From contig CM074511.1 of NCBI GenBank assembly GCA_037379345.1, positions 5,828,001-5,892,000 on the forward strand: 64,000 bases of DNA, given 5' to 3'. The notes beneath the pieces are model-generated. The model did no database searches, was not told the origin of the DNA, and saw nothing but the letters and a program-made list of their open reading frames with translations. This DNA comes from Perna viridis. Its lineage: Eukaryota. Below, one piece after another: positions 34,101 through 64,000 of this stretch. The translations under genes and the position numbers were made by a program. Each line of letters opens with the position of its first letter. The stretch's first letter is position 1.

Positions 34101-37100
34101 TGAGAGAAAAATAATAGAGAAAATGCTTATAAATCTTTATCTGGAGGAAGAATTGTGTGTTCATGATGTCTCTGCTCCAACTCATTTGCTACTTCTTCTT
34201 AAAGTGGTTAAACAAAATGAAGTGAGTAAATTTGATTAGGCCTTATGTAAATATCAGATTTAATCTCTCTCTCTACATATATATACACCTACAATCTTGT
34301 AATTGGCCAGAGCTAATAAACCCAACTAGGAGTGTGGAATAGTGGAAATGGAAGTTAGACATGCAGGCATGATGGCCATTAATTCAATCGAAAAAAATAT
34401 CAAATATATTCATAATCATATTAATTCACATTTTTAAAAGGGTTGATGACACTCTTTCGAGACAAATACACAGCATCCATTATGAGTTTATAATTCAATA
34501 ATTTGCAAAAATAATCAGGACATTATTTCTAATTTTCCTAAACATGTCAATAAATTAGAAAAATAAATGCAGATTGATTCAGGTTCTCCTCTGTGTTTTA
34601 TATTTAATGTTCTTGGTTCAGGTAGCAAAGCCTGTTGAGGAGAGGGATTTTGTTTGAATTATTCTGTGTCTATTGGGAATATTTTGCTGTGGAGAAAATA
34701 TTGACAGATTTCAATGAAGCGTTCTTTGCGATATGTTTTAGAGAAATAGGTATCAAATTCACATTCGAAGACATTTCTGATCAATTGCTGGATATAGTTG
34801 TGAGCTAGTGTTTAATTACTTGAAGAAAATTGCTTTTTCACTATAACTTTTATTGAAGCAGGATTAAAGATTTAACGGACTGTTTGATTACATTCTTAAT
34901 AATCAACTTACAGTCATTTTATGAAAACCAGGAAATATTAATTTGGATTACTCAAAACTTCTAAAATTGATTTCTTCATATAAAAAATATATTTTTTATT
35001 TGTGAAAAATCAGTGATTATATGCAACTATTAAATAAAGCATCAGAATTTTTTAAAAAATGTTCATTAATGTTTAATCATGATATAAAATTTGTTTTTGA
35101 TGGAAGGAAATGGATGATTTCATTTAATATCCCTGTCAGAAGTTCTGTTATTTCTCTTAGAATTTTATACCCTTTATCAGTTAAACAGGTTCTTTCTGAG
35201 TCCTTATCTTAAAGATCCTCATGATAAGAATAAAGTTTGTTATAGTGCCTTGAATAAATTGGCCTCCTTGCAAAAACAAAGATTTCCTGCATTTTGAACT
35301 GAGTGTAGATTAGACAGTTAGTAGCATGGTGAGTTGCCATAGAAACGTTGATTAGGGATGATGTTGTAACCTATTGACCCACCAATCAACACTAGGTATT
35401 GCCATCACATGATAAGATGCTACTTTTAGACAGAAATAGCACTCACACATATCTTTATAGCAAGTGCATGTGGAGTGGACATCAATAACTATTCCACTGT
35501 TGGAATTTTCAGCTTTTAAGGGGATATTAATTATATTACTAAGTGATAGTGCTGTGTTCAGTGAGAGGAGTTTGTTTGATTAGGTTAGAGCATGCATTTT
35601 CTTTGATATTTGGATTAATTAACAGCGAAACCATGCAAATTCATAGGACATTTTTAGCTTTTTACTCATTATTAACCTTACTTGGGACTGGAAACTTAGC
35701 TGAGATCCCACACCCTCCAGTGAATTTTCATGCTAATGATGTAGGACCTGGATTTATTCAGTTAGCATGGACCCCTGTTCCTGGAGATGACATCCAATAT
35801 TACAAGTTACAATACAGGGAGAAAGGAGATATAAATGGATTCATTGAGGAGAGAACTAATTTACCAGGACTTAAAGTCCAAAATCTTTCTCCGTTCACAG
35901 AGTATCAATTTCAAGTTGTTGGTGTTAACAGTTTAGGGGATAGTAGACCAACAGATATTGTAGAAAAGAGAACTAGTCCAATGGGTTTGTATTACATTCT
36001 TTTAGTAGTCTTAATTTAAATATTTCAGAAACTTTTCAGTATTTTTTATTAAGTTTGATGGATAGTATAGATGTTTTTTGTAGTAGTTCTCTCTTTCTAC
36101 CAATTGTTCATTCACTCCATATATTTCTTTCTGATTGAATTTGTCATCTTCCATGTAGGAAAAGTAGTTATACTGAAAAACTTCTTAAGCCTTGAAAATT
36201 ATAGCATGAATATACTTTAACCTGACAAATTAGATATCAGTCGATTTAATAGAAGTTCTATTTATGATCTTCCTCTCAAGCACCTTTTCTAACAAGAAAC
36301 ACATGCTTATAATTGTTGCCAAGCTCAAAACTTACATTGATTTTTTGTGTGTACAATAATACATAATACAATCTAGGTTTTCATGGAGAATGAATTGTCT
36401 TTTTGTAATTAACAGGCAATTCTGGTGATAATGATGCAATTATTGTCATAATCAGATTCCATTTGTATCAATTGCTCTGTAAATTACATGTACATGTATG
36501 TAAATTATGTCAATTGGATTTGTTGTACAAGCCTACAATTTTTTGAAGAATGTTGACAACTCTGAATATTTTGTATTCAAGTAAATGTCAGTATCTTAAT
36601 TCTTTAGTAAGATTTTCCAAGTTTTTTTTTCATCTCTTAGAAATTTGATATTACTACATTTTGGATATCTAGATTTTCAAATGAAAACAAAATCAGTTAA
36701 ACTTGAAAGGTGTTATTTTGTTCTGGAAATAATGCACGGATCCCGCCAACATTACTCTACTGTTAATTTCCTGTACACGTGTCCAGAAGTTTACAGTTGC
36801 ACAACATCATCTTTAATTTCAAAATCTTTAAAATTATGTGTTGATAGAAATACTGCAAATACTCCTGTCTACTGCACCTGTGCACTTAGTGAAAAAAATG
36901 TTTATGAATGATGTAAGGAGTTAAAGTAAAAATAATGAAATTTTACAAAATAAATCATGGAAGTCTTGACATACATTCTTGACTTTTGTGATTACATAAT
37001 TAATGGTACATCTGGCATGTCTGAAACAAAACCATGGTGAGCTTATATAGAACAGGGTTCTTTCTTATCAGGTGTCCAGCTGTTGTATTGCAAGGGTATC

Positions 37101-52100: not shown

Positions 52101-55100
52101 AAAAACCAACTATGTCAAAACAACATGGATGTCCTGTTTAACACTTTAAAGTATTTAATGCAATATTTTTGTTGTTGTTGTTGCTATTTAGGCCATATCA
52201 AGTAAATTATAAATAGATTCTCATCCACATATGTTAAAAATATTTGTAAAAATTCCAAAATAAAATAACTTAGCAGTTATTAAGTTTGAGTGGTGGGGAT
52301 CAGAATCTACATATTAATTTGATGTGGCCTATGGATAGTAAAGTGAATAAAGTTTCATTAAGATCCAACTGACTTTTTCCTTAAAGTCAACCAATCAGCT
52401 TCAATGTGAAGGTCTGTGAAAGTACACGTAAATCAAACTGAGAATACACAAACTGAAACCTCTGGCATTAAAAGTAAGCCCTTCACTATACTATAATATC
52501 AAGTCTACTCTTGGTGTCTTAAGAAAAAACTAGTACAAATAAAAGTACAGGATTTATTATATTTTAGTGCCATGATACTTGTGGCTTCCATTGTGCTCAT
52601 CATCAGTAATATGCTTGGATTTACGTGATATAAATCAGTCTCCTATTCAAACGCTATTGTGACCTGGTTTTAAACATACTTTTGGTTTTACCGGAAATTG
52701 GCAAAAATTACCGATTTTGATAATTTTGGAGAAAAAATGTATTAGGGTTTGGAGAAAAAATTAGAGCCAGTTGGGAAACCCAAAACATACATTTTTTTAT
52801 TTTGGCCTTAATAGTGTATTTATTTATTGAATATTTCAGTTCTATGAGCTTAGTTTGACCACAGTAAAGGTTTCTTGTAGTACAGAGTTCTGTGATTGTA
52901 ATTTAACAGAAAAGAAAGACCTTATTTTTTTGGCAATTCTTGAAGACTTTAGGTTGATCAATAATTTTCTTTCAATGACTCTCTTTGTAGGGATACAAGA
53001 TATTTTACACATTAGAAGCAGACTTGCCCATAACTTTATGGCACCAACATGATGTACCATTACCGCAGGCAAACCAAAGACAGGCAACCATTACCCTACT
53101 GAAGCCTAACAAGACATACAGTTTGTGTGTTCTAGCCTATTCCAACCTGGGAGAAGGTCCAATCTCTGACTTGATCCAAGTCATGACCAGGCCTGGAGGT
53201 ATATCATGTTAGATAGCCCTATCTTCATCAATAATGATTTAACAGAAAATTGTAGAGGCATATTTAGCAAGTAGCACGCAAAGTTGAATGCTGGCATGAG
53301 CTAACCATGTTTTATTTCTTCAGTAAAGTTGTTCTTGCCATCTTTTCATGGAGGTAAAGTTTTAAAGATGATGAATGTACTCCATTGAGACCTTGAATAG
53401 AAATTAATTCTGATTTGATGGGAAAATTATTATGTATAGATTGGAATTTTACTGTGTGAGTTACATCACTTAGTATTATAAGAAAATTAAAGGGTTTATA
53501 TTTGATAATTCATTATAAAGCATGGTTTTATATTGTAGCGCATGCATACCTTACACATGACATAAAATAGTAATCGCATTACAATGCATGATAACATCAT
53601 TCTCCAAACTGTACTATTATTTGCATGATTTGTACCATACAACTTAAAGAGCCAGAAGAAAGCCTATTATATTATATATCCTTTACAATATCCATTAGCA
53701 CACATTCTCCTATTTCACACTTCCCACTATGACAGTTTGTGTCCTGCCAAAGTTTTGCTGACTAAACAGTCTGTGGCGTATGTGCTCATTTGTTTACGTG
53801 TCAGTATATTCTCTGTCTGTCTGTTTGTCAAGGTTAAGGTCTTTGTTAGTGATAATTAAATATGGTCATTTTATAGTAACATACCTTTCCACAGGCAATT
53901 TCTTTATTTTGAGCATATTTTGTTCCGGGTATGAGGGATCTATTTTTAGAGGTTGGCATCAAATACTGGCTTTCTTGTTATGTCATGGAAATCGTGTGCA
54001 TCTTGTTCATGCTACTTGTATCTCAAGAATTATAAAAAGATTTTAAAATTTCTCTGAATAAAACAAGACATGATTTACAATTTAAATTTTCATTTGTAGA
54101 AATAATTGATTAAAAGCATATTTTATTTACTTTGGCGCCACTTCTCATTTTTCAGTATCATCAGTGTCTCATTTATGATTACATGTCCCCTTCATAAAAT
54201 GATTTTAAATATTTGAGGAAATCAGAAATACATCATAATAATGTGTGCATGCTTAGAAATGTGATATTAAAAGTCCTGTAATGACATAAACTGTGCTGAG
54301 TAGCAACATATATAATCATTAGTTAATGTGATTGTGAATGTAATGAAGGCTCCAGAAGATCATTATCTACCTCATCCATAGAGCACTATTATCCTCGATA
54401 TATTCCTCACTGCACCAAGGTAACACTATTCTCACTGATATTTGAAAGAGCCTTGGAAGAGTGGAAGCCATACTTTTGACCAAGTCAACAACAACAACAA
54501 CAAAAAAAAACATTTATTTCAGTCATAGGTTTTCAAGACTCTACAAATCATGAAACGTCAGTTAAATTTTAATCAAAATACTCTAGCTTTAGAAAAAAAT
54601 GTTTTCCTCTTATTTTCTGTTTTTGATCATGATTTTTGTCGTATGACTAAAATAAGCATACAAAACATTAATTCTTTGTAAGTGATGTGAAATGTAAAAA
54701 TTTCTTTGTGACAAACAGTGACCTTGAATGACTTCTGGAGTCTTGGAGAAATGTTTTGTGGGAATGCTTTGTTTTGACCAATGAAAATTGTGTTTACAGA
54801 TGAATGTTTAGCTAATCCTTACAAATGTATCCAATATCCTGGTAAGTTACTACACCCGCAGGTCACTAATTTGGATGAAAAATATCAAAAAATGGGTGAA
54901 AATTGTTAAGCTGGAAAGTAAAGTAAGGTGTTCTTAGTCATGAAGGCAAAAATAGTTGGTTCAGTCAGATAAGTGTGGAGTACGTGACCACATACAGAGA
55001 TGAGGCATATTTTATGAAATTTGACAGGATGTTCTTCCATTTGTACCTTGTCGACTTTTTATCTGAAATGATTTTATCATAATTTCCATTCCTCATAGAA

Positions 55101-58100
55101 GTTCACAGTTTTCTGTATAGGCTATGAACAATGAAAATGTATTACACTGATAAAACAAATGATCTTTTCTGAAAATGATGAGAATTTGAAAGCTGACTGA
55201 TTTGTGTTAGATATGGTTCTAAATTAAAGTTTTCTTTGTGAACTTAAAGCATGATCTTCAAATAAGATAATTATCACTTTTCTAGTAAAACAACTGTTAA
55301 ACTATTAGCTAATGTCATCTTGTTATAGCCTGTCTGTCTGTTCATCTTGTTATAGCCTGTCTGTCTGCTCATTTTGTAATCATGACAACATAATTCCAGC
55401 TTAACAATTCCGAATTAGTGACACTTGCAATATATGTTCAAAATTTTTTCTCTCACGTCTTCTCTAAACTGCATGTATTTTTCCAGTTTTTACAATACTT
55501 CTATATGAAAAAATTGGGTTAAATCTCCAAATTTAATGAAAGGATCTTTCAAGTATAACATGTCGTGTGTTGTTGCCTTTATAATATGTCACTAGTATTT
55601 CTATGAATGACCGCATCCATGCGAATGTGTTATATGCGTGCATCTTTGTGAACATGCGCCTGAACCTTTTGATATATACTCCATGCGAGCATGCTCTATT
55701 TGATATTAGTGTAGACCCTATCTACATGATTTTCATTACTGATTTATATTGTTTGCGCGTTCTTTGAATGTCTGCCTCTTAAAGTTCATCTCTGGCTATT
55801 GTTCTTTCTCTTTTAAAATTTTTGTGTTGTACTTTTTTAGAACTCAATTTTTGGAAAAAAAGTAATGAAGCTCAATTTATGCTTTTGAAAATTTGATGAA
55901 GTTTTCAATTTTTTGGAAGAAGTATAACACAGTTATCTTTTCCAGTAATGTTTATTCATGAATCAAAATATTAAATTTTTTTGTAAATGAGAGTAATAGT
56001 TTTGAATGCGCTCAGAGCGCTAGCGATAAAATGATATTGCTAATTTAATGCATTTAATGATTTGTGACTGATGTTTGCGTTATTTTCTACCCTGCTGCCT
56101 TGCTCTCTAACAGGAATTTACGGTGAGCTGCGTTGATGTGTATTTTTTCAGCACTCGTTCAGATTGCAGTCTGGACATCAACTATCTCTTTATTTTTAGT
56201 TTTTTTATTGTGATATAATTTTTTACATTTGTGTATTAAGATATGTAGAATTTCCACTGGATATAATCTGACTGCTTTTTTGTTTCAGTGTGTACTATGA
56301 AGTCTTTAGTTTAGAGGCAGAGCTTTTCACTTATCTAATGCTTCTATTATTTCAGAAGTTGTTTTGGGAAAATTTAATCTCTTTCCTCAATTCAAATTAA
56401 ATTGAACAAGTTTCTGTCAGCTATTGTAAATTAGAAAATAAAATACCACGTATTTGAATGTGAGTTAACAAGCAATTTATGATATTAGCAAATTGTGGGG
56501 AGTTGATTTCCACAAGAAAAGCTTTGCTTTATGTGTTTTAGTTGTCTTCATTGTTTTTGGTGATAATTAAAATTTCAGCCTCTTAAGCTCATTGAATTAA
56601 TGTCAAAATTTATGTTTCACTAAAAATCTTTTCCAACAGTGCATGTGTCATTTGTACTCAATTTAAACTTTGAAGTAGAGGTCTGTTTTGTAATATTTAT
56701 GAACATTGTCTGGGTTTTTCAGCTTATAATGGTGGTAAGCTTTTAATGATCTAAGCTTGCTCTTGCCTGAAGACCTACATTAGTTTTGGAATGATATGAT
56801 AAACGAAATAACTAAGGCCACATGAAGTTAATTTGTAAGTTCTCATCCACTAACAACTGAAAAAAATGGGATGGTTGGGAGGATTTTCTTCTCTATTTTT
56901 TATTTCTCAGAAACTGTTCAATCATAGCAGAGAATTAATCATCTTGAGATCTCCAAGTGAAATTCATATTCACCACATTTGGTCACAATTTCAAATTGTG
57001 TTATAACCGGGAGCCAGTTGCCATTTCATTAACATAGTGTCACGATGGATAAGCTCGTGAAAAAATTTGAGAAATTTGAACTGCCAAAAAAGTAACAAAA
57101 AATTGGCTGGGTAGGAATGAGAATTATCTTGATGTGGTCTTGCAAAAGTTAACAAAAATTTTGTCTAAATATGATCTTGACAACCTAATACCAAAGCCTT
57201 TTTTCTTTTTGTATTGTTCTTGGGTTGATTTTATGACATTATCATTTTGATGACTTTTTAGTCTAGAAATCTATTGTTTGAATCAAGAGAGTTTCAAAAA
57301 TGCAACAGTTATACATGACTAAGATGTAACCTATAAAGATAATCTTTTAGGTTATTGAAATTTAGATAAGAGAGACTTTTTTTATCAAAAAGTATTTAGT
57401 TTAAAATTTCCTTCTTCATTTCTGTAAAATTTTTAAAAGTGATGTTGTGTATCAAAATTCTTCTTATATTTATTTTTAATGTACATGCATTCAAGTGCTT
57501 CAGGTTAATACCATAACAACAATTTACTACTCTTTAATAAAACAAAAACATTTTTCAGAAGAATGCATATTATGCTAATTGAAATAAATGATTTTGAGAA
57601 GTTCTGCATGGTCTTCCCTGTTGTAACTATATATCTAAACATAACATTTATTGAAGACATTAACTTATTTTATGGACTCCTTGCATGAAAAATGGAACAA
57701 ACATTGATTTTTCTAAAACAATAATATTGCTATTGATACCTAAAATTGAATATTTGATGTTCAGCAGTGTTTGTGTATTGTTTATAAATAGCTAATAATT
57801 CCCCAAAACAGAGTTTATAGTTAATAAAAAATGCATGAAACTTGTACTATTGAATATTTCTCAACAGTTTAAACAATGTATATCAAGATCTTAGGATTCA
57901 GGCCAGAGAAATCAGACTTGCATGTCTAAATAAACAAACATCTTATCTACTGGTAGCATGCATTTGTTTAAGAGCACATGAAATGAGTCATGTAAATCTA
58001 TTTGTTTACCAGTATCTCAGGATTTCAGTACATTGTATAATGGAAATTTATAAATTTGAAAATTGTATATATTGAATTGAAACAAATACTTCTTGTTTAA

Positions 58101-61100
58101 TCATAGGATAAAAACACTGCATTGTTACGAATTCATCACTTTTTCCAGCTTAATATTTTTTAGAACATTAAAACAGATGGTAAATTTTTATTGCTTTAAA
58201 ATTCTTCATTTTTCCAGCCTGCATTAAGCTGCCAGCAACCTAAGAGGACAAGCATTCTGCTCATGCCATGCAGCGATTCATGCCTTTGCCAGCAAGCTGC
58301 GATGGTACAACCTGAGTAATGAATATGTTCATTTTGTTTCTCTACTGTAGATTATAAGTGAAGCTTTGAGTATGTTACTGAAGATTTAAAATTCATTCTT
58401 CTTTTTTAGTTCCTGGCCAACCAAGAAATCTCCATGCCAATGTGAAATCACCAAACACCATAGAAGTCACATGGAGTCCGCCTGAAAACTTCCATAACAT
58501 CATCAGCTACAAGCTATATTACAATGACTCCACTTTCCGACAGGCTGCTCATGTAGTTATCTCTCCTCCCACTAACAACTACATGCTGGAGGATCTTATA
58601 CCTGATACCATTTACCATATTCAGGTTTCAGCAACCTCCAGTAATGGCGAGGGAGCAAAGTCTACAATTGTTCAGGCTCAGACCTTGCAGTTCAGTATGT
58701 ATTTGATGTTTAATTGTTGTTTCACACATGTAAAGGAGTAATCTCAAACCTAATCTGACTGTAGTCTCGTAAAATGTGAATTCCATGTTCAATGTCAGGG
58801 TCATCATAGTATTCATATATTGTGCATTACTTATGTTTTAGGAAAAAAATTCTTGGGTTATTCCATCATATTTCCATACTTGTGTTTGAAATCCTGAATC
58901 TTGGATTTATTTGTATATATAACCTTAAAAACATTGGTTATCGATTTGTTTTTCAATTCATGGAAATGCAATGTGATGACATTTTTCCATTAATAACAAC
59001 ATCCTGTTTTGCATAAATTGCCCTTACTCTGATGACCTTGACACGACCTCTTAAGTAATACTGCTTCTAGTGCAGTGACAAGTAAATGGCGAAGTGTTAT
59101 CACACTCCTTAGATACATGTTGTACAGTTATACACACAACAATTCATTTCATTTCATTTTGGTTTTGTTTTTTTTTTTATTATTATTTGACATACAGAAT
59201 GTTTTCAGTCGTCTGGATTTTAAGGTTGCTACTATTCTGTATTTAATATGAATGCTTTTCTATGGAATGTTGAAATAGGGAATATTTTATGCAACTTTTC
59301 TTGAATGTATATATAGATGCTATATGGATTAATGATCTCCCTGGAAGTAAGTAAAAACTTCAGTCGAATGAAAAGTTCACAACAAATATATCTTTACTAT
59401 TTATTTCAAATCATAATTTGACAAAATATTTCAAGAAAAACATTTTTTAAGGAAAAGATCTGTGGAAACTTTTCATTCATTTCATTTTTAATATTGAGGG
59501 TTGGTCTTTATTACAATTGAAGTAATTATTCCATGTTGCCATTTTTTTGTTGGTCGTTGGGTGTCAATATTTTAATGTATCTTATAAATCAAAGTACAGT
59601 TGTTTCATAGTATGTACAGAGTATGTTGAGTTGCAATGCTTTTGGCTTTACAGTTCTTTTTCTAATTATTTAAAGCAGTGGTTACATTCAAAGTTGAATG
59701 CAAGCTTATTTTTTGCTTCCAGTTTCCATAAATGACTGAAATATTTTGTTCTATTTTCTCTGGACTATTTTTTCTTTTGAATAATTTTTTCATAGGTACG
59801 ACTTGCATTATGGGAATCAACCCATGCAAAAATTAAAATCTTTAGATTATTAGAGAATTTGTCATGGTTAATTTAGACTATGCATCTTTGATCCTATAAG
59901 CATTTGCTTTAATCAATAATATGCTAAGCATTAACTAACTGTACCAATTTCTCAGTGCAATGTCTGACAATAAAGCCTGTCATCATGAAATTTTGAATTA
60001 TTATGTCCTTGCATCAAGTTAAGTAAAATTTGATATGTCTTCCATTTGTTTGATGCAGTGCCATCTAGTAGCCCTTACCTAGAGGAAAATGCAATTTAAT
60101 TTTTGCATGTTGATTCCATTTAAAGCATGTTTAATTTTCTGTTCTGTATACAAAGCTTTTCTTCTGTATCATTTTTTACCCATAATTTTTCTTCCACTAA
60201 AAAGTTCCAAGTGCTGCACCTCAAGCTGTCACCGGACAACCTATCAGTAAAAATAGCATCAAAGTTACATGGAAACAGCCTCCTGCAGAACATCACAATG
60301 GTGCCCTTGATGGGTATAGAATCTTTTTCCGTAAGAATGATAGTGATTTGACCAATGAGGATGCCAGCGTCATCAAGGTTGGCAAAGATGCTAGGATGTT
60401 GAAGTTAGGTGACCTTGACATTTGGACCAACTATAAGATCTGGGTCCTAGCCTTCTCCAAAGTAGGTGAAGGTCCTTCGTCTCCTCCAATCATTGTACGG
60501 ACCCAAGAAGATGGTAGGTAACCATGGCAACATATAGTTTTCCCCCAGTTGGAATGAATTTGTTGTTTTTACTGATTTTAATAACAAAATCGGTAACAGA
60601 ATGGCTGGATTTCTGTCATGCTTTATCATCTCATTGTGTGTGTCTGCAAATGGGAGGGTGGGTTTTTATTTTGCTTCTCACATTGTTAGTCATCCACATT
60701 GTTTTTTTCTTTAGTTCTCTACATTTTTTCCCCTTGTTCTGCATGACCTTAACAAGAACAAAATATGACCTTGCCCTTTACTGTGCCCATAACCTTGAAT
60801 CTGTGTCCCCTTAACCAAAAGAATGTTTGTGTTTAGGAGAAAAAATCCCAGTTGATGTTGTAAAAAATATTAAATGCCATTCAACATTCAACAGAAGTGT
60901 CTTTTTTTAACCAAAAACTCTCAATTTGAGTTTCAATTCTGGTATTGATCAAAATCAATAGTCCCTTACAAAATGATTGATGGGTCTTAGTGGTGAAACC
61001 CCTTTCAAATGGAGAATTCATTGGCAGTGATTTAAAGGTAAATCCCTCAGGATCTGTTCACCTGGGGAATTCATTGGTAGTGATTTAAAGGTGAACCTCT

Positions 61101-63506
61101 GGGGATGTGTTCACCTGGAGAACTCATTGGCAGTGATTTGAAGGTGAACCACTCAGGATCTGTTCACCTGGAGAATTCATTGATACTGACCCCTGATCAT
61201 CATCCATTCTCTTACCTTATTCATTTCATCTACATGTATTTTTCATCATTTTATATATTTTTTTTTTGGTCATTATTAATCTACTTTTGTCAAAACTATT
61301 TTCAACATTCATAACATTATCTTCTAAAACCATCAAATTACTGCATCATTATGTCATCATATCTCCTGCTGTTTATAATAATGTCATCAGTGTTCATCCA
61401 AAGTATTATTTGCAAGCAAAGTTCAAAGGTCATATAACCACCATCAAAAGTGTATCATCACTTTTTTATTTCAGTTTTCATAATTCGGCTGCATTCATTA
61501 AAGCCTTAGGTTCTATAATACTTTGGATTGATACCATGTAAAGCTAACATGTATTCTTTCATTCATCCTAGCTTGACAGAAATCCTTCAGAAAAAAAAAT
61601 TGTTTTAGCTTTTTTTTTTAAAACGAGTCCTACAACATATTACTAACTAGATAATGATGAAAATGGTGTTGCCCATGTATATTACCTACTTGTTCGAAAG
61701 AACCACAAGTTCAAATATGGAAACCTTTTGTTTAAAACCATGGAAAGAAAGAGTCCAGTCTTAATCAGTGATTATTTAATGATAAAACCTCAGCAAATTT
61801 TTATAAGATTTTTTTTTAATGTAAACATGGGGAAAAAAAAGATTTTCAAGGGACATAACTCTTTCCATGTTGTCATTTAAACTAGAGGTTGACCTGATGA
61901 ACCATTGTGTTTTACATGAGTTTGTTTACCAACTAATCTTAAAGTTATCTCCCTTTGGACCAATGTAAGTATGTTAAATGTTTGATGTTAGATGTTGCAT
62001 GATGCACGTTTTGTTATACCTATTGAATTTCTATAGATGTGGAGTGCATTCAAAATCTTTTAATTGTTACTTTTGAAATGTCTCCAAGATAACCCTTTCT
62101 GAGCTTTGCATGTTCAGAAAACCTCACTATCTCAGAAATTTATATCAACCTAGGTGCTTTTAATGTCTATATAGTTGTTTGCATTTTAACTTCATAGATC
62201 ATTGAATGTATTGGTGATTAAATTAACTTGAGTTTTAAATTTAGAAAGGTTTACTGCCTGGTATATAAAAAGCATTTTTTAATACTCTGAACTTGATTCA
62301 TGGAAGTGAAGAATTTTTTTTTTATTTATTTCATTGTCTTTCTGTTGATGACAATCCATACAATTTCTAACAAATGTAAATTTAAATTCAATTCTTGCCA
62401 ATATCCGAGCCATTTTTAATTCCCAGGTCAAAGATAAAATAACAGTTAATACATTTACATAGCACATAATGGATATTGTGGGGTTTTTTTTGAAAATAAT
62501 GATCCCCAAAATGATGACAATATTCAATATTTCCCCTGTTGATTTAAGATGATAAGACAAAAATCTTTGATTTCCTTTCTGTTCCATTGTGACTTAATGT
62601 GATAAATAGGATAGACCACAGACCTAAATCAGGGTTGTGGATAAACATTAAGATTTGTGGATTAAGGTTTGATTAGAAGTGATTCACTTATAGGTCATGA
62701 CTCATTAATTTTGTTAATCTTAGGCAAACATCATCTTTTTGATAAGAATTAGATGTATATGTCAGTTCGTGAATAAAAATGCCAACAATTTTTCCCTGTG
62801 CTGGCATCAATTACTGTATTAAATGATGCTGCAAAGATAAGGATTGGCCTTTAGTTTGAAAATAGTTGAAATGCAAACTTCATGATGTGGAAAAAATGAA
62901 AGATTTATAATTCAGTGATTCTCAAAAAATGAATGTCTTATTTGTAAAGGTGGTAAAAATCATTTTCAAGAAGCCTTAAGTACAAAAGATAATGGTGTAA
63001 AAAAATTAGGCAAGTTCATGTAATTTTGTGTAAACAAAAATAAATTTTAAATTCCAATCTTTCATTGATATAACTGGCAGACAAAATCAGGAAACTATGA
63101 AGCAGCACTTGCCTTCAGAGTAAAAATAATCAATTTCAGTACAAACATTATATAAGTTATTTCCCCTTGCTTTCATGTGCATATCCTGTTTCAGTACCTG
63201 GAGAACCAAAGCATGTGAAAGCGCAAGTTGTCAACTCTACTACACTATTTGTGAATTGGAAACCTCCTGTTGCTAGGAAACGCAATGGTATCATACGGGG
63301 ATATTATGTATATTACATTCCAGTGGATGATAAAGGTCATCCAAAAGGTCAGGAAAAAGTTTTTGACACCAAAGATGGCAGTGATGTTGACGCAGTGATA
63401 ACAGAACTTGACCCTAACACATTGTACAAGATAACTGTGGCAGGCTATACTAGGAAAGGAGATGGATCTCGGAGCTCTGATGTCAGGATAAAAACTTCAG
63501 GACCTG
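14745..63506 (+). CDS. Lar: LAR-family receptor protein tyrosine phosphatase, partial multi-exon gene (Ig1-3, FN3 1-5); 5' and 3' ends outside the identified span
   Basis: Ten exons join in frame with GT-AG introns. Motifs match LAR/PTPRD/PTPRS as I know them: [81 protein letters not shown]. Confidence 0.96.
16086..16116. repeat. (AC)n(AT)n compound microsatellite
   Basis: Direct observation. Confidence 0.85.
16757..17010. repeat. Minisatellite, about 46-bp unit x5
   Basis: agattgaccaggccaggtctgactcaggtctgtttatcacatatgt variants. Confidence 0.9.
21475..21666 (+). CDS. Lar: LAR exon, Ig2 N-terminal part (192 nt, phase 1-1)
   Basis: Acceptor tttctatttaag|GTATA, donor CCAG|gtaata; [28 protein letters not shown]...[20 protein letters not shown]. 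Confidence 0.92.
21925..23461 (+). mobile_element. HINE-like element B (ttttagctcacctg...caggtgagc...ttgtt) with internal tandem units, interrupted by a SINE
   Basis: subTIR gctcacctg (21930) / caggtgagc (23426), 3' hairpin aggctcctgggagcct, internal repeats ggggtcagacag, insertion into a T-run. Confidence 0.85.
21955..22450 (-). mobile_element. SINE-like retroposon copy 1 (Deu/Nin-like core)
   Basis: Flanked by TSD c(g/a)aaggccatgtga (21941-21954, 22451-22464); homologous to 49326-49832; caat-type tail; CpG-rich. Confidence 0.88.
24485..24595 (+). CDS. Lar: LAR exon, Ig2 C-terminal part (111 nt, phase 1-1)
   Basis: Acceptor tttttgccag|GATAT, donor AAAG|gtcagt; [37 protein letters not shown]. 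Confidence 0.95.
24650..25100 (+). mobile_element. Decayed HINE-like/satellite-bearing repeat
   Basis: Two related units (...ccacaaaa..aag..tgg.att.atttt....gaat.aggggcca..aa); family not identified with certainty. Confidence 0.45.
25106..25362 (+). mobile_element. Second, truncated copy of HINE-like element B
   Basis: tttttagcttacatggccaaaggccatatgagctatggccatcacttggc... aligns with 21925-21954 joined to 22465-22660. Confidence 0.85.
29011..29250. repeat. Minisatellite, 30-bp unit x8
   Basis: ttgttctactccaatgcctgtctgtacatc. Confidence 0.97.
30867..31465. repeat. Minisatellite, about 84-bp unit, 6-7 copies with internal rearrangement
   Basis: ccatgggtattctgtacttcagtgtttaactaggctttctacagg...gtaaaagataggtaatactcttaatc. 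Confidence 0.9.
32903..33172 (+). CDS. Lar: LAR exon, Ig3 domain (270 nt, phase 1-1)
   Basis: Acceptor tatttacag|TAAGA, donor AAAG|gtaaga; [12 protein letters not shown]...[13 protein letters not shown]...[22 protein letters not shown]. Confidence 0.95.
33919..34050 (+). mobile_element. 5' fragment of a HINE/Helentron-like element
   Basis: tttatacccc...gggatatattggaatcacc followed by a (ctgt)n microsatellite. Confidence 0.55.
35333..35386 (+). promoter_or_regulatory. Candidate internal promoter motifs: RFX X-box-like GTTGCCATAGAAAC and CCAAT box
   Basis: X-box-like at 35333-35346 and CCAAT at 35382-35386, 250-300 bp upstream of the ATG at 35633. Confidence 0.35.
35700..35984 (+). CDS. Lar: LAR exon, FN3 repeat 1 (285 nt, phase 1-1; 5' boundary uncertain)
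   Basis: AEIPHPP...LAWTP...YYKLQY...[21 protein letters not shown]; donor ATGG|gtttgt. The acceptor gaaacttag| lacks a pyrimidine tract; a second in-frame acceptor lies at 35657|35658. Confidence 0.88.
40719..40882. mobile_element. Small GC-rich MITE
   Basis: TIRs caggcgcagatccaagga / tcctggatccgcccctg. Confidence 0.75.
41738..41868. repeat. Degenerate tandem repeat x3 (about 48 bp)
   Basis: cattgtatcatgaaccctttt repeated three times. Confidence 0.75.
44337..44500. repeat. Perfect minisatellite, 41-bp unit x4
   Basis: ttgaattgatactgctcggggttgttgctatggtgtagaac. Confidence 0.97.
45206..45399. repeat. Minisatellite, about 36-39-bp unit x5
   Basis: ggttctgttcccgggctgacagtagaggacttgtaa variants. 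Confidence 0.9.
48055..48241. mobile_element. Short MITE
   Basis: taaggcaggaaccatttg ... caaatgattgcagcctaa imperfect TIRs, with inner gggggctat/tagccc..accccc. Confidence 0.55.
48720..49947 (-). mobile_element. Interspersed repeat copy B (reverse of 7155-7815), interrupted by SINE copy 2
   Basis: Reverse-complement blocks match copy A on both sides of the SINE; boundaries approximate. Confidence 0.78.
49326..49832 (+). mobile_element. SINE-like retroposon copy 2 (Deu/Nin-like core)
   Basis: TSD ccaatcagca(a/g)ca (49311-49323, 49833-49845); gcacgttaaagaaccc core; tail gctgaaatattgctgctcggacgttaaa plus caa(g) repeats. Confidence 0.88.
50832..50932 (+). CDS. Lar: LAR exon, FN3 repeat 2 first part (101 nt, phase 1-0); not in ORF track
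   Basis: Acceptor ttctttccag|CTCCA, donor CAAG|gtttga; manual translation [34 protein letters not shown]. Confidence 0.93.
51224..52811. mobile_element. About 1.6-kb non-autonomous DNA transposon
   Basis: Ends ttaaggccaaaaaaaaatgtctgtttagggtt ... aacccaaaacatacatttttttattttggccttaa. Confidence 0.75.
52191..52329. mobile_element. MITE (ggcca.atcaa...ttgatgtggcc) nested in the 1.6-kb element
   Basis: ta|ggccatatcaag...aatttgatgtggcc|ta. Confidence 0.7.
52991..53198 (+). CDS. Lar: LAR exon, FN3 repeat 2 second part (208 nt, phase 0-1)
   Basis: Acceptor ctctttgtag|GGATAC, donor GGAG|gtatat; GYKIFYT...[33 protein letters not shown]. Confidence 0.93.
56114..56122 (+). CDS. Lar: Candidate 9-nt microexon (adds GIY between FN2 and FN3)
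   Basis: ccctgctgccttgctctctaacag|GAATTTACG|gtgagc; frame-preserving, phase 1-1, strong splice sites, TGC motifs in the pyrimidine tract. Confidence 0.65.
56816..57139. mobile_element. MITE of the same family as 52191-52329
   Basis: taa|ggccacatgaag...ttctcatcc ... gaatgagaat...ttgatgtggtc. Confidence 0.65.
58410..58694 (+). CDS. Lar: LAR exon, FN3 repeat 3 (285 nt, phase 1-1)
   Basis: Acceptor cttttttag|TTCCT, donor TTCA|gtatgt; VPGQPRNL...VTWSPP...[23 protein letters not shown]...QTLQF. Confidence 0.94.
60205..60513 (+). CDS. Lar: LAR exon, FN3 repeat 4 (309 nt, phase 1-1); not in ORF track
   Basis: Acceptor ccactaaaaag|TTCCA, donor GATG|gtaggt; manual translation [42 protein letters not shown]...[33 protein letters not shown]. 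Confidence 0.93.
61011..61183. repeat. Tandem repeat, about 53-bp unit x3
   Basis: ggagaattcattggcagtgatttaaaggtgaacc...ggatctgttcacct. Confidence 0.85.
63195..63506 (+). CDS. Lar: LAR exon, FN3 repeat 5 (312 nt, phase 1-1)
   Basis: Acceptor cctgtttcag|TACCT, donor CCTG|gtaaga; [10 protein letters not shown]...[20 protein letters not shown]...[13 protein letters not shown]. Confidence 0.95.
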
Positions 63507-64000
63507 GTAAGATAAGAAAACATACAGTATAGAAAATAACATAGACACATGGTTTTCATGGCATCATCTTGAAAGGACATATTGATGCAGCCAAAACAGA
63601 TAAATAGATGTACAATAATTACTGTATTAGTAACAAATTGTTGTAATTAGTAAACACAAGAAAATAAGCATGCCTATAATGAAGTACAGGCACTGAATCT
63701 GATAGTGTTGTTTATATATATTTGGATGACCTTTTTATCATGTAGTATTTTTTTCATTTCCATTACCTATATACCAGCCATTAACTTATGTACCATATTC
63801 ATGCATTACTAACACAAGCAATGCATATCATATTCATGTGTAAGGGGTCGTACTGGACACACTAGTCTGTTTTAACCAAAATATTGATAAAATGAAACAT
63901 ACGTAGCTTTTATAAGGTAAGTTGTACTATTTATTACTACTACTGGTAACATACTATAAATGTTATCACAAGCGTGAGTTTCTATATTCATTTATGTTGC

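Follow-up and report, generated by a model that had tools for sequence, protein, structure and literature searches.

The analysed window is a 64-kb stretch of the mussel Perna viridis genome (64,000 nucleotides (nt) of contig CM074511.1, assembly GCA_037379345.1, positions 5,828,001 to 5,892,000 of the forward strand; G+C 32%), whose + strand carries Ig1-3 and FN1-5 open frames in the order of a LAR-type receptor tyrosine phosphatase gene. Our subject is the hinge between the FN2 and FN3 domains of this receptor, where the intervening intron holds a 9-nt cassette microexon (me9) together with two further cassette exons. LAR-family phosphatases are presynaptic organisers, and in vertebrates their choice of partner is set by the spliced inserts meA and meB. 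Judged by its Ig/FN ectodomain, the gene is a LAR-type (type IIa) receptor tyrosine phosphatase orthologous to Lar/PTPRF/D/S, with the phosphatase domains D1 and D2 lying beyond the 3' end of the window. Exon translations match Pfam fn3 (FN2 second exon 3.7e-6, FN3 exon 3.2e-16), the closest solved structures to the FN3 exon are the third FN domains of PTPRF, PTPRD and PTPRS, and the hinge with its flanking exons aligns to proteins named Lar-like or PTPRF/D/S-like.

FN2 is encoded by two exons, the second of which (FN2b) stops at 53198 (...CCTGGAG, then gtatat); the FN3 exon begins at 58410 with TTCCTGGCC, preceded by ttttttag. The 5,211-base intron between them is phase 1 at both ends, and exon and domain borders coincide: FN2b ends in the last FN2 residues, and the next exon opens with VPGQP, the start of FN3. 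The FN3 exon has one full match in the genome (second best 37% identical), and the 201 bases around me9 are single-copy in the 723-Mb genome. The features of the hinge are as follows.

52991-53198, + strand: FN2 second exon (FN2b), ending in ...RPG and base 1 of a split codon; donor gtatat; read depth 30-50, contigs end or join there.
54800-54841, + strand: 42-nt cassette exon (E42), acceptor gtgtttacag, donor gtaagt, phase 1-1.
56065-56113, + strand: upstream control region of the 9-nt exon, with CTGAT, a UCUC tract, four TGC and CTAAC.
56114-56122, + strand: 9-nt cassette microexon (me9), GAATTTACG, inserting G-I-Y, phase 1-1, with junction reads.
56123-56128, + strand: me9 donor gtgagc, used in reads that connect me9 with FN3 and with me12 (below).
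56723-56734, + strand: 12-nt cassette microexon (me12), CTTATAATGGTG, inserting A-Y-N-G; acceptor gggtttttcag, donor gtaagc.
58410-58694, + strand: FN3 exon, starting with the last two bases of a split Val codon; donor gtatgt; depth 84-91.

The microexon had first been proposed from the letters of the DNA alone, as a 9-nt exon flanked by tgactgat, a pyrimidine tract and ctaacag/gtgagc. All of these elements are present at 56065-56128, with tgactgat at 56065-56072 upstream of the exon and the splice context reading ctaacag, GAATTTACG, gtgagc. The proposed change of RPG-VPGQP to RPG-GIY-VPGQP without a frameshift also stands: inclusion reads G/GA ATT TAC G/TT (G-I-Y-V), keeping the 1-1 phase and introducing no stop. 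With AG/GT splice sites, a preserved frame and a length well inside the 27-30-nt upper bound of the class, me9 belongs to the cassette microexons. Its 9-mer occurs once in the 64-kb window on both strands, against 0.13 occurrences expected.

RNA reads allow the exon to be observed directly. We aligned four runs, picked by searching with the FN3 exon, on 52900-58800: two raw runs from two studies (X21 and X24) and two contig runs (X14 and X10). Joint tables were thresholded, and rarer exon combinations than those given here may exist. All raw reads lie on the strand expected of a + strand gene. The junction predicted from the sequence is found in both raw runs, as a +9-nt form (joint 53199>58409, with AATTTAC between) supported by 2 reads with two starts in X21 and 3 reads with three starts in X24; the inserted letters are listed for X24, and the X21 reads are known by the identical joint. 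Since one matching G is absorbed on each side of AATTTAC, the inserted letters equal the whole me9 9-mer. Two further X24 reads contain the tandem E42-me9-me12-FN3 (AATTTACG and CTTATAATGGT between 54842 and 58409), none being listed in X21. Across the reads me9 is therefore seen in four junction types (FN2b-me9, E42-me9, me9-FN3 and me9-me12), and it accounts for 2/65 reads entering FN3 in X21 and 5/64 in X24, the remaining 63 and 59 reads having skipped or replaced it. Read depth in the intron near me9 stands at 0.9 and 0 (exons: 30-91), and so the junction reads do not derive from unspliced RNA. The reads thus show me9 to be a true cassette microexon of the LAR-type gene, included in some transcripts and skipped in others.

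The same reads reveal two companions that the original prediction, which pictured a single hinge microexon, had missed; me9 itself is real, and the picture was incomplete by E42 and me12. Within the FN2-FN3 intron the genomic order is E42, me9, me12; all three are phase 1-1, and they are used both singly and in tandem. The major form in X21 and X24 carries me12 (+12 nt; joint 53198>58409 with CTTATAATGGT between, the following base being G so that the insert is 12 nt), with 43-44 reads in X21 and 46 in X24 and some loose read ends besides. The direct FN2b-FN3 joint, the skipped form, is represented by 19 and 11 reads, respectively. Counted over all reads entering FN3, me12 is present in 44/65 (X21) and 50/64 (X24). 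Entry into E42 is seen in X24 (joint 53198>54800, recorded as 53196>54798 with a cut of +2; 3 reads), as is E42, left at 54841/54842, followed by me12 and FN3 (2 reads), neither being listed in X21. E42 encodes 14 residues with two cysteines six residues apart, and the hinge inserts seen in reads are 0, 3 (GIY), 4 (AYNG), 18 and 21 residues long. Of the three exons in this hinge module, me12 is thus the main one and me9 a minor one.

Two observations on the transcripts stand apart from the module. In each of the four runs, the central part of abundant foreign transcripts, among them a 2,365-base contig (depth 28.7), aligns with 3 mismatches to a 36-base intron patch at 56813-56848. The flanks are unrelated on both sides, and the patch probably derives from a repeat or from some other gene and not from a LAR exon. 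Downstream, most X21 and X24 reads leaving FN3 at its donor (58694) run into the start of the FN5 exon (~63173-63520), with a consensus agreement past FN3 of 0.66-0.72 that indicates a mixed population, and the X14 contig continues from FN3 into the FN4 exon (~60201-60518). It therefore seems that FN4, a whole-domain exon, is subject to alternative skipping.

The region upstream of me9 differs from that of every other acceptor compared at the hinge. Its AG-free zone extends over 90 nt, against 26-51 nt at the FN2b, E42, me12 and FN3 acceptors, and the 60 nt upstream contain four TGC triplets, against 0-1 at the same four acceptors (zero for me12). UCUC-type motifs number three at me9 and three at FN2b, with none at E42, me12 or FN3. 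A branch-like CTGAT lies at -46 and CTAAC at -7, and the TGC triplets start at 56076, 56093, 56096 and 56101 (-38, -21, -18 and -13 from me9). The original prediction was right to place TGC in the tract, and its count of three falls one short of the four that occur within 45 bases. Such density is scarce: 45-base windows with at least 4 TGC form just 7 clusters across the 64 kb.

The layout at me9 agrees with that described for neural microexons controlled by SRRM3/4. One study gives the upstream enhancer of SRRM3/4-dependent microexons as UCU_CUC[N1-50]_UGC, with UGC between branch point and AG in 57/73 and 51/71 microexons (bioRxiv 10.1101/2024.09.17.613571). In published accounts, SRRM3/4 and fly eMIC layouts combine UCUC...UGC between branch point and AG with branch points of the CUAAY type and extended AG exclusion zones; UGC is also described as neither strictly necessary for the SRRM4 response nor exclusive to SRRM4, and the element is reported to bind other positive and negative regulators as well (SRSF11, U2AF2 and PTBP1). 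At me9, UGC lies near the AG, downstream of a UCUC tract and branch point, within a long AG-free zone.

To gauge chance we scanned the whole window for YAG, 3-30 nt, GTRAG with a pyrimidine tract, which yielded 9 sites on the + strand and 2 on the - strand; me9 is the sole such candidate within the FN2-FN3 intron. We also counted in-frame, stop-free microexon candidates in 2000 dinucleotide-preserving shuffles of that intron. Any such candidate arose in 227/2000 shuffles, one with at least 2 TGC in 34, with at least 3 in 6 and with at least 4 in 0. The SRRM3/4-type UGC signature first claimed for me9 is borne out, its layout matching the published one and no shuffle of the 2000 equalling it. 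By its cis layout me9 is the only hinge exon to carry the signature of an eMIC exon, far beyond chance. As me12 has no upstream TGC, yet is dominant in X21 and X24 and absent from the X14 and X10 contigs, it seems to be regulated by a route other than that of me9.

Other TGC-rich stretches of the window may be recorded here. A G+C-richer patch filled with TGC/GCA at 58215-58310, 100-190 bases upstream of the FN3 acceptor, is one of the 7 TGC-dense clusters and could be an intronic splicing element influencing hinge-exon choice. A further cluster lies at 55613-55665. At 36890-36912, ~0.9 kb past the FN1 exon, a 23-nt YAG...GTAAGG candidate has 3 TGC upstream and is not frame-preserving.

A trans-acting counterpart was sought in the same genome. 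Searching with Pfam SRRM_C (PF15230) at E <= 0.01 gave no match; relaxing to E <= 10 returned two colinear RS-rich exons on contig 9 (G000:C9:2083595-2083762 and 2086700-2086744), which, scanned singly, match SRRM_C positions 7-56 (E 2.4e-4, 22.1 bits) and 54-67 (E 3.6e-4, 21.5 bits). Motifs in these exons presumably resemble the conserved eMIC core. The locus is probably the Srrm234 locus of this genome, in which case the eMIC factor would be present. Because a UGC- and UCUC-rich 3' splice site with a long AG-free layout coincides with an eMIC-like locus in the genome, me9 may, alone among the hinge exons, fall under the SRRM234/eMIC programme and hence be included mainly in neurons, a proposition for which we judge the balance to be about even.

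For the distribution of hinge inserts in other animals, LAR proteins were collected using the full-length orthologues P0007 and P0160 as queries, plus cluster members, and the FN2b and FN3 translations from the window were locally aligned with them to extract the hinge. Sequences shorter than 600 residues (P0242, P0244, P0265-P0268, P0314, P0350-P0356) or with an FN3 alignment score below 120 (P0194-P0200, P0202, P0203, P0291, P0297, P0329-P0331, P0349) were left out; nine of the sequences left out are from fish, and a pattern match showed no insert in them. Two other routes to the hinge were discarded. A representative protein search with the FN3 exon was topped by giant multi-FN3 proteins, with LAR orthologues making up only some of the rows (the representatives inspected all had a skipped hinge), and its yield was the query P0007. 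An FN3-only protein search gave single-exon open reading frame fragments of another bivalve, 71-74% identical and read through from the intron, which say nothing about the hinge. The protein searches returned none from this species or a close mussel.

Scallops carry a hinge insert in 19/21 sequences, at the position it has in the mussel, between ...QVMTRQG and VPLQP. All 12 Pecten maximus sequences have one: ten read ARTNCSRKTCFSEFV, one EFV alone (P0340) and one GDSM alone (P0345). Mizuhopecten yessoensis has an insert in 5/6 (ARDSQCSRKTCFPEIV), Ylistrum balloti in 1/2 (GVSA) and Argopecten irradians in 1/1 (GDSM). The parts correspond to those of the mussel one by one. A two-cysteine exon (ARTNCSRKTCFS in Pecten, ARDSQCSRKTCFP in Mizuhopecten) is the counterpart of the 14-residue E42 product; a 3-residue insert (EFV in Pecten, EIV in Mizuhopecten) follows it directly, where the mussel has GIY; and a 4-residue insert, GDSM or GVSA, compares with mussel AYNG. 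The two differ in that scallop models show the 4-residue insert alone, whereas mussel reads place it also after the other two. With E42, me9 and me12 the mussel therefore has the scallop set, agreeing with it in hinge position, in a two-cysteine exon and in inserts of 3 and of 4 residues. Because the scallop set mirrors that of the mussel, the module, on the evidence of these protein models, dates back to the mussel-scallop split or earlier, and me9 does not appear to be private to the mussel lineage.

Inserts of other kinds occupy the hinge elsewhere in the molluscs. They are present in 13/16 sequences of the abalone Haliotis (APIFD and AGLP/VGPT, single or combined), 3/4 of Gigantopelta (AGPP), 6/8 of Pomacea (AGFQ, with GFQ once), 10/13 of Biomphalaria (20 residues), 7/8 of the chiton Liolophura (GMSRLYP or DDSAKA) and 13/17 of octopuses (VPVNKPVIFD with or without QS, and ES once), as well as in 8/8 of the nemertean Lineus (13 residues). 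The earlier view of me9 as a lineage-specific switch gives way before these data, given scallop models with a 3-residue insert at the same hinge and inserts in six other mollusc genera and a nemertean. The Pomacea canaliculata inserts GFQ (P0170) and AGFQ (P0173/P0259) lie one residue apart at their start, a pattern suggestive of NAGNAG-type tandem acceptors at a single 12-nt exon, not of two exons.

No hinge insert was found in 31 sequences of non-pteriomorph bivalves (Mercenaria 11, Mya 8, Ruditapes 8, and Mactra, Potamilus, Sinanodonta and Solemya), in 10 further gastropods (representatives only), in 4 annelid, 11 chelicerate and 4 unnamed sequences, or in 11 vertebrate sequences (9 of them by pattern match only). 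Among metagenome contigs, a collection from which the window's own genome and very near ones may be left out, four loci (L007-L010) hold a distant LAR orthologue, 46-48% identical. L007 has no FN2 exon within 6 kb upstream of its FN3 exon. A 15-nt in-frame exon candidate ~3.1 kb upstream of FN3 in that locus (2891-2905, equal to L008 277-291) was rejected, having no TGC and being no better than chance. Within the mussel genome, a gene on contig 13 has an FN3 exon 36-37% identical to that of LAR (G000:C13:15320414-15320692, - strand) and a further FN exon 1.2 kb upstream. This gene could be either a LAR-like paralogue that has diverged or a different Ig/FN receptor, and at this identity its FN3 is too distant to serve as a guide to the hinge.

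The hinge site is distinct from the mini-exon sites already described for the family. A review (PMC8711739) lists four LAR-RPTP mini-exons, meA (Ig2), meB (Ig2-Ig3), meC (FN5) and meD (near D1), and describes meB as micro-exon-encoded and meA as built from two tandem micro-exons that give meA3, meA6 and meA9. The mussel inserts fall between the last FN2 and the first FN3 residue and, on the positions given there, coincide with none of meA-meD, as had been predicted. None of the papers listed in our literature search deals with an FN2-FN3 LAR mini-exon, although the supplementary tables of microexon catalogues may list such exons.

In its logic the hinge module comes nearest to vertebrate meB, with which it shares the principle of a small, frame-preserving spliced insert at an interdomain linker of the ectodomain in the same receptor family; it departs from meB in its site (FN2-FN3), in using three combinatorial exons (0-21 residues) instead of one and in having no sequence similarity. 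Its combination of tandem micro-exons for graded insert lengths recalls meA, whereas meA lies inside Ig2 and forms part of the ligand interface, the mussel exons lying between two FN domains. With the SRRM3/4 (eMIC) neural microexons me9 has in common its size (<=27 nt), its preserved frame, its location in a synaptic adhesion receptor and its UGC/UCUC/AG-free layout; it differs in being known here by that cis layout, the eMIC domain being represented by just two sub-threshold exon matches.

Taking these data together, we consider it very likely that, as a whole, the hinge holds a real three-exon FN2-FN3 cassette module that is shared with scallops and lengthens the linker, with me9 carrying an eMIC-type layout. 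Several points weigh against this account. Inclusion of me9 is low (2/65 and 5/64 junction reads). X14 and X10 yield one contig each, with the direct FN2b-FN3 joint and hence the skipped form only; as contigs drop rare variants, they show only that this form dominates there. For neural use in particular, all RNA runs are tissue-coded, so that the counts carry no tissue assignment, and both SRRM_C exon matches fall under the Pfam 27-bit cut-off. The homology of me9 to its scallop counterpart rests on position, size and order in protein models, not on DNA, and EFV/EIV and GIY share only the central hydrophobic residue.

Some of these points would equally suit an exon that is real and regulated by another factor, or in non-neural cells, with the TGC-rich flank serving something else. 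The coded tissues of X21 and X24, an me9 inclusion of just 3-8% and the sub-cut-off SRRM_C matches are compatible with this, as is the published account of UGC as neither required for nor exclusive to SRRM4 and of SRSF11, U2AF2 and PTBP1 as binding the same element. We nevertheless think it somewhat unlikely, given that the full combination at me9 matches the vertebrate and fly eMIC layout, including a distal CTGAT and four UGC no more than 40 nt from the AG, and that neighbouring exons of the same intron are without that full combination. A second alternative regards me9 as splicing noise, a functionless cryptic pseudo-exon used occasionally. Its reads are few, and an in-frame pseudo-microexon turned up in 227/2000 shuffles, but none of the shuffles attains the TGC content of me9, the exon is used in both raw runs, which come from separate studies, and takes part in four junction types, and scallop models keep a 3-residue (9-nt) insert in the same place and order. 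Exons as short as 9 nt are, moreover, not expected to splice without dedicated signals, and we regard noise as improbable. That the reads stem from a paralogue, an allele with a 9-base insertion or aligner misplacement is hardly credible: the aligner did report the 9 bases as letters between the joint sides without placing them, but those letters are identical to the only copy of the 9-mer in the window, which stands between AG and GT. The genome has just one full match to the FN3 exon (next 37% identical), the region is single-copy, and in the tandem reads the 9-mer sits, as in the genome, between two further exons of the intron.

For the three-exon module we infer consequences at the linker from an exon-by-exon analysis of the hinge. 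The inserts would lengthen and loosen an FN2-FN3 linker whose length is zero when they are skipped. By analogy with meB, which is reported to extend the Ig2-Ig3 linker and to determine how the adjoining domains are spaced and oriented (PMC6078854), they may alter the distance and the angle at which the FN1-2 module stands to the membrane-proximal domains. In mammals, NGL-3 binding maps to FN1-2 (PMC12155224). Because the hinge sits directly below the FN1-2 module, the most likely consequence would be an altered reach or angle of the ligand-binding head.

A wider reading, held tentatively and at less than even weight, is that the hinge is a fifth, ancient LAR mini-exon site across molluscs and perhaps in a nemertean, providing a graded linker code of 0-21 residues, with me9 neuron-specific and SRRM234/eMIC-driven. 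On this reading the site would be present in bivalves, gastropods, cephalopods and a chiton; the vertebrate, chelicerate and annelid models examined are without it. If this wider reading is true, molluscs would have built their own meB-like linker switch beside the FN1-2 module, on the splicing programme that vertebrates use at Ig2-Ig3. For annotation, a gene model from which the 9- and 12-base exons are missing gives a wrong picture of the dominant isoform, the +12 form making up 68-78% of junction reads in two runs. The hinge exons constitute a further spliced site of LAR, shown by RNA reads in a mollusc and lying just below the FN1-2 module, and me9 offers a concrete test case, outside vertebrates and insects, of whether the neural microexon programme exists in molluscs and what effect it may have on a synaptic receptor.

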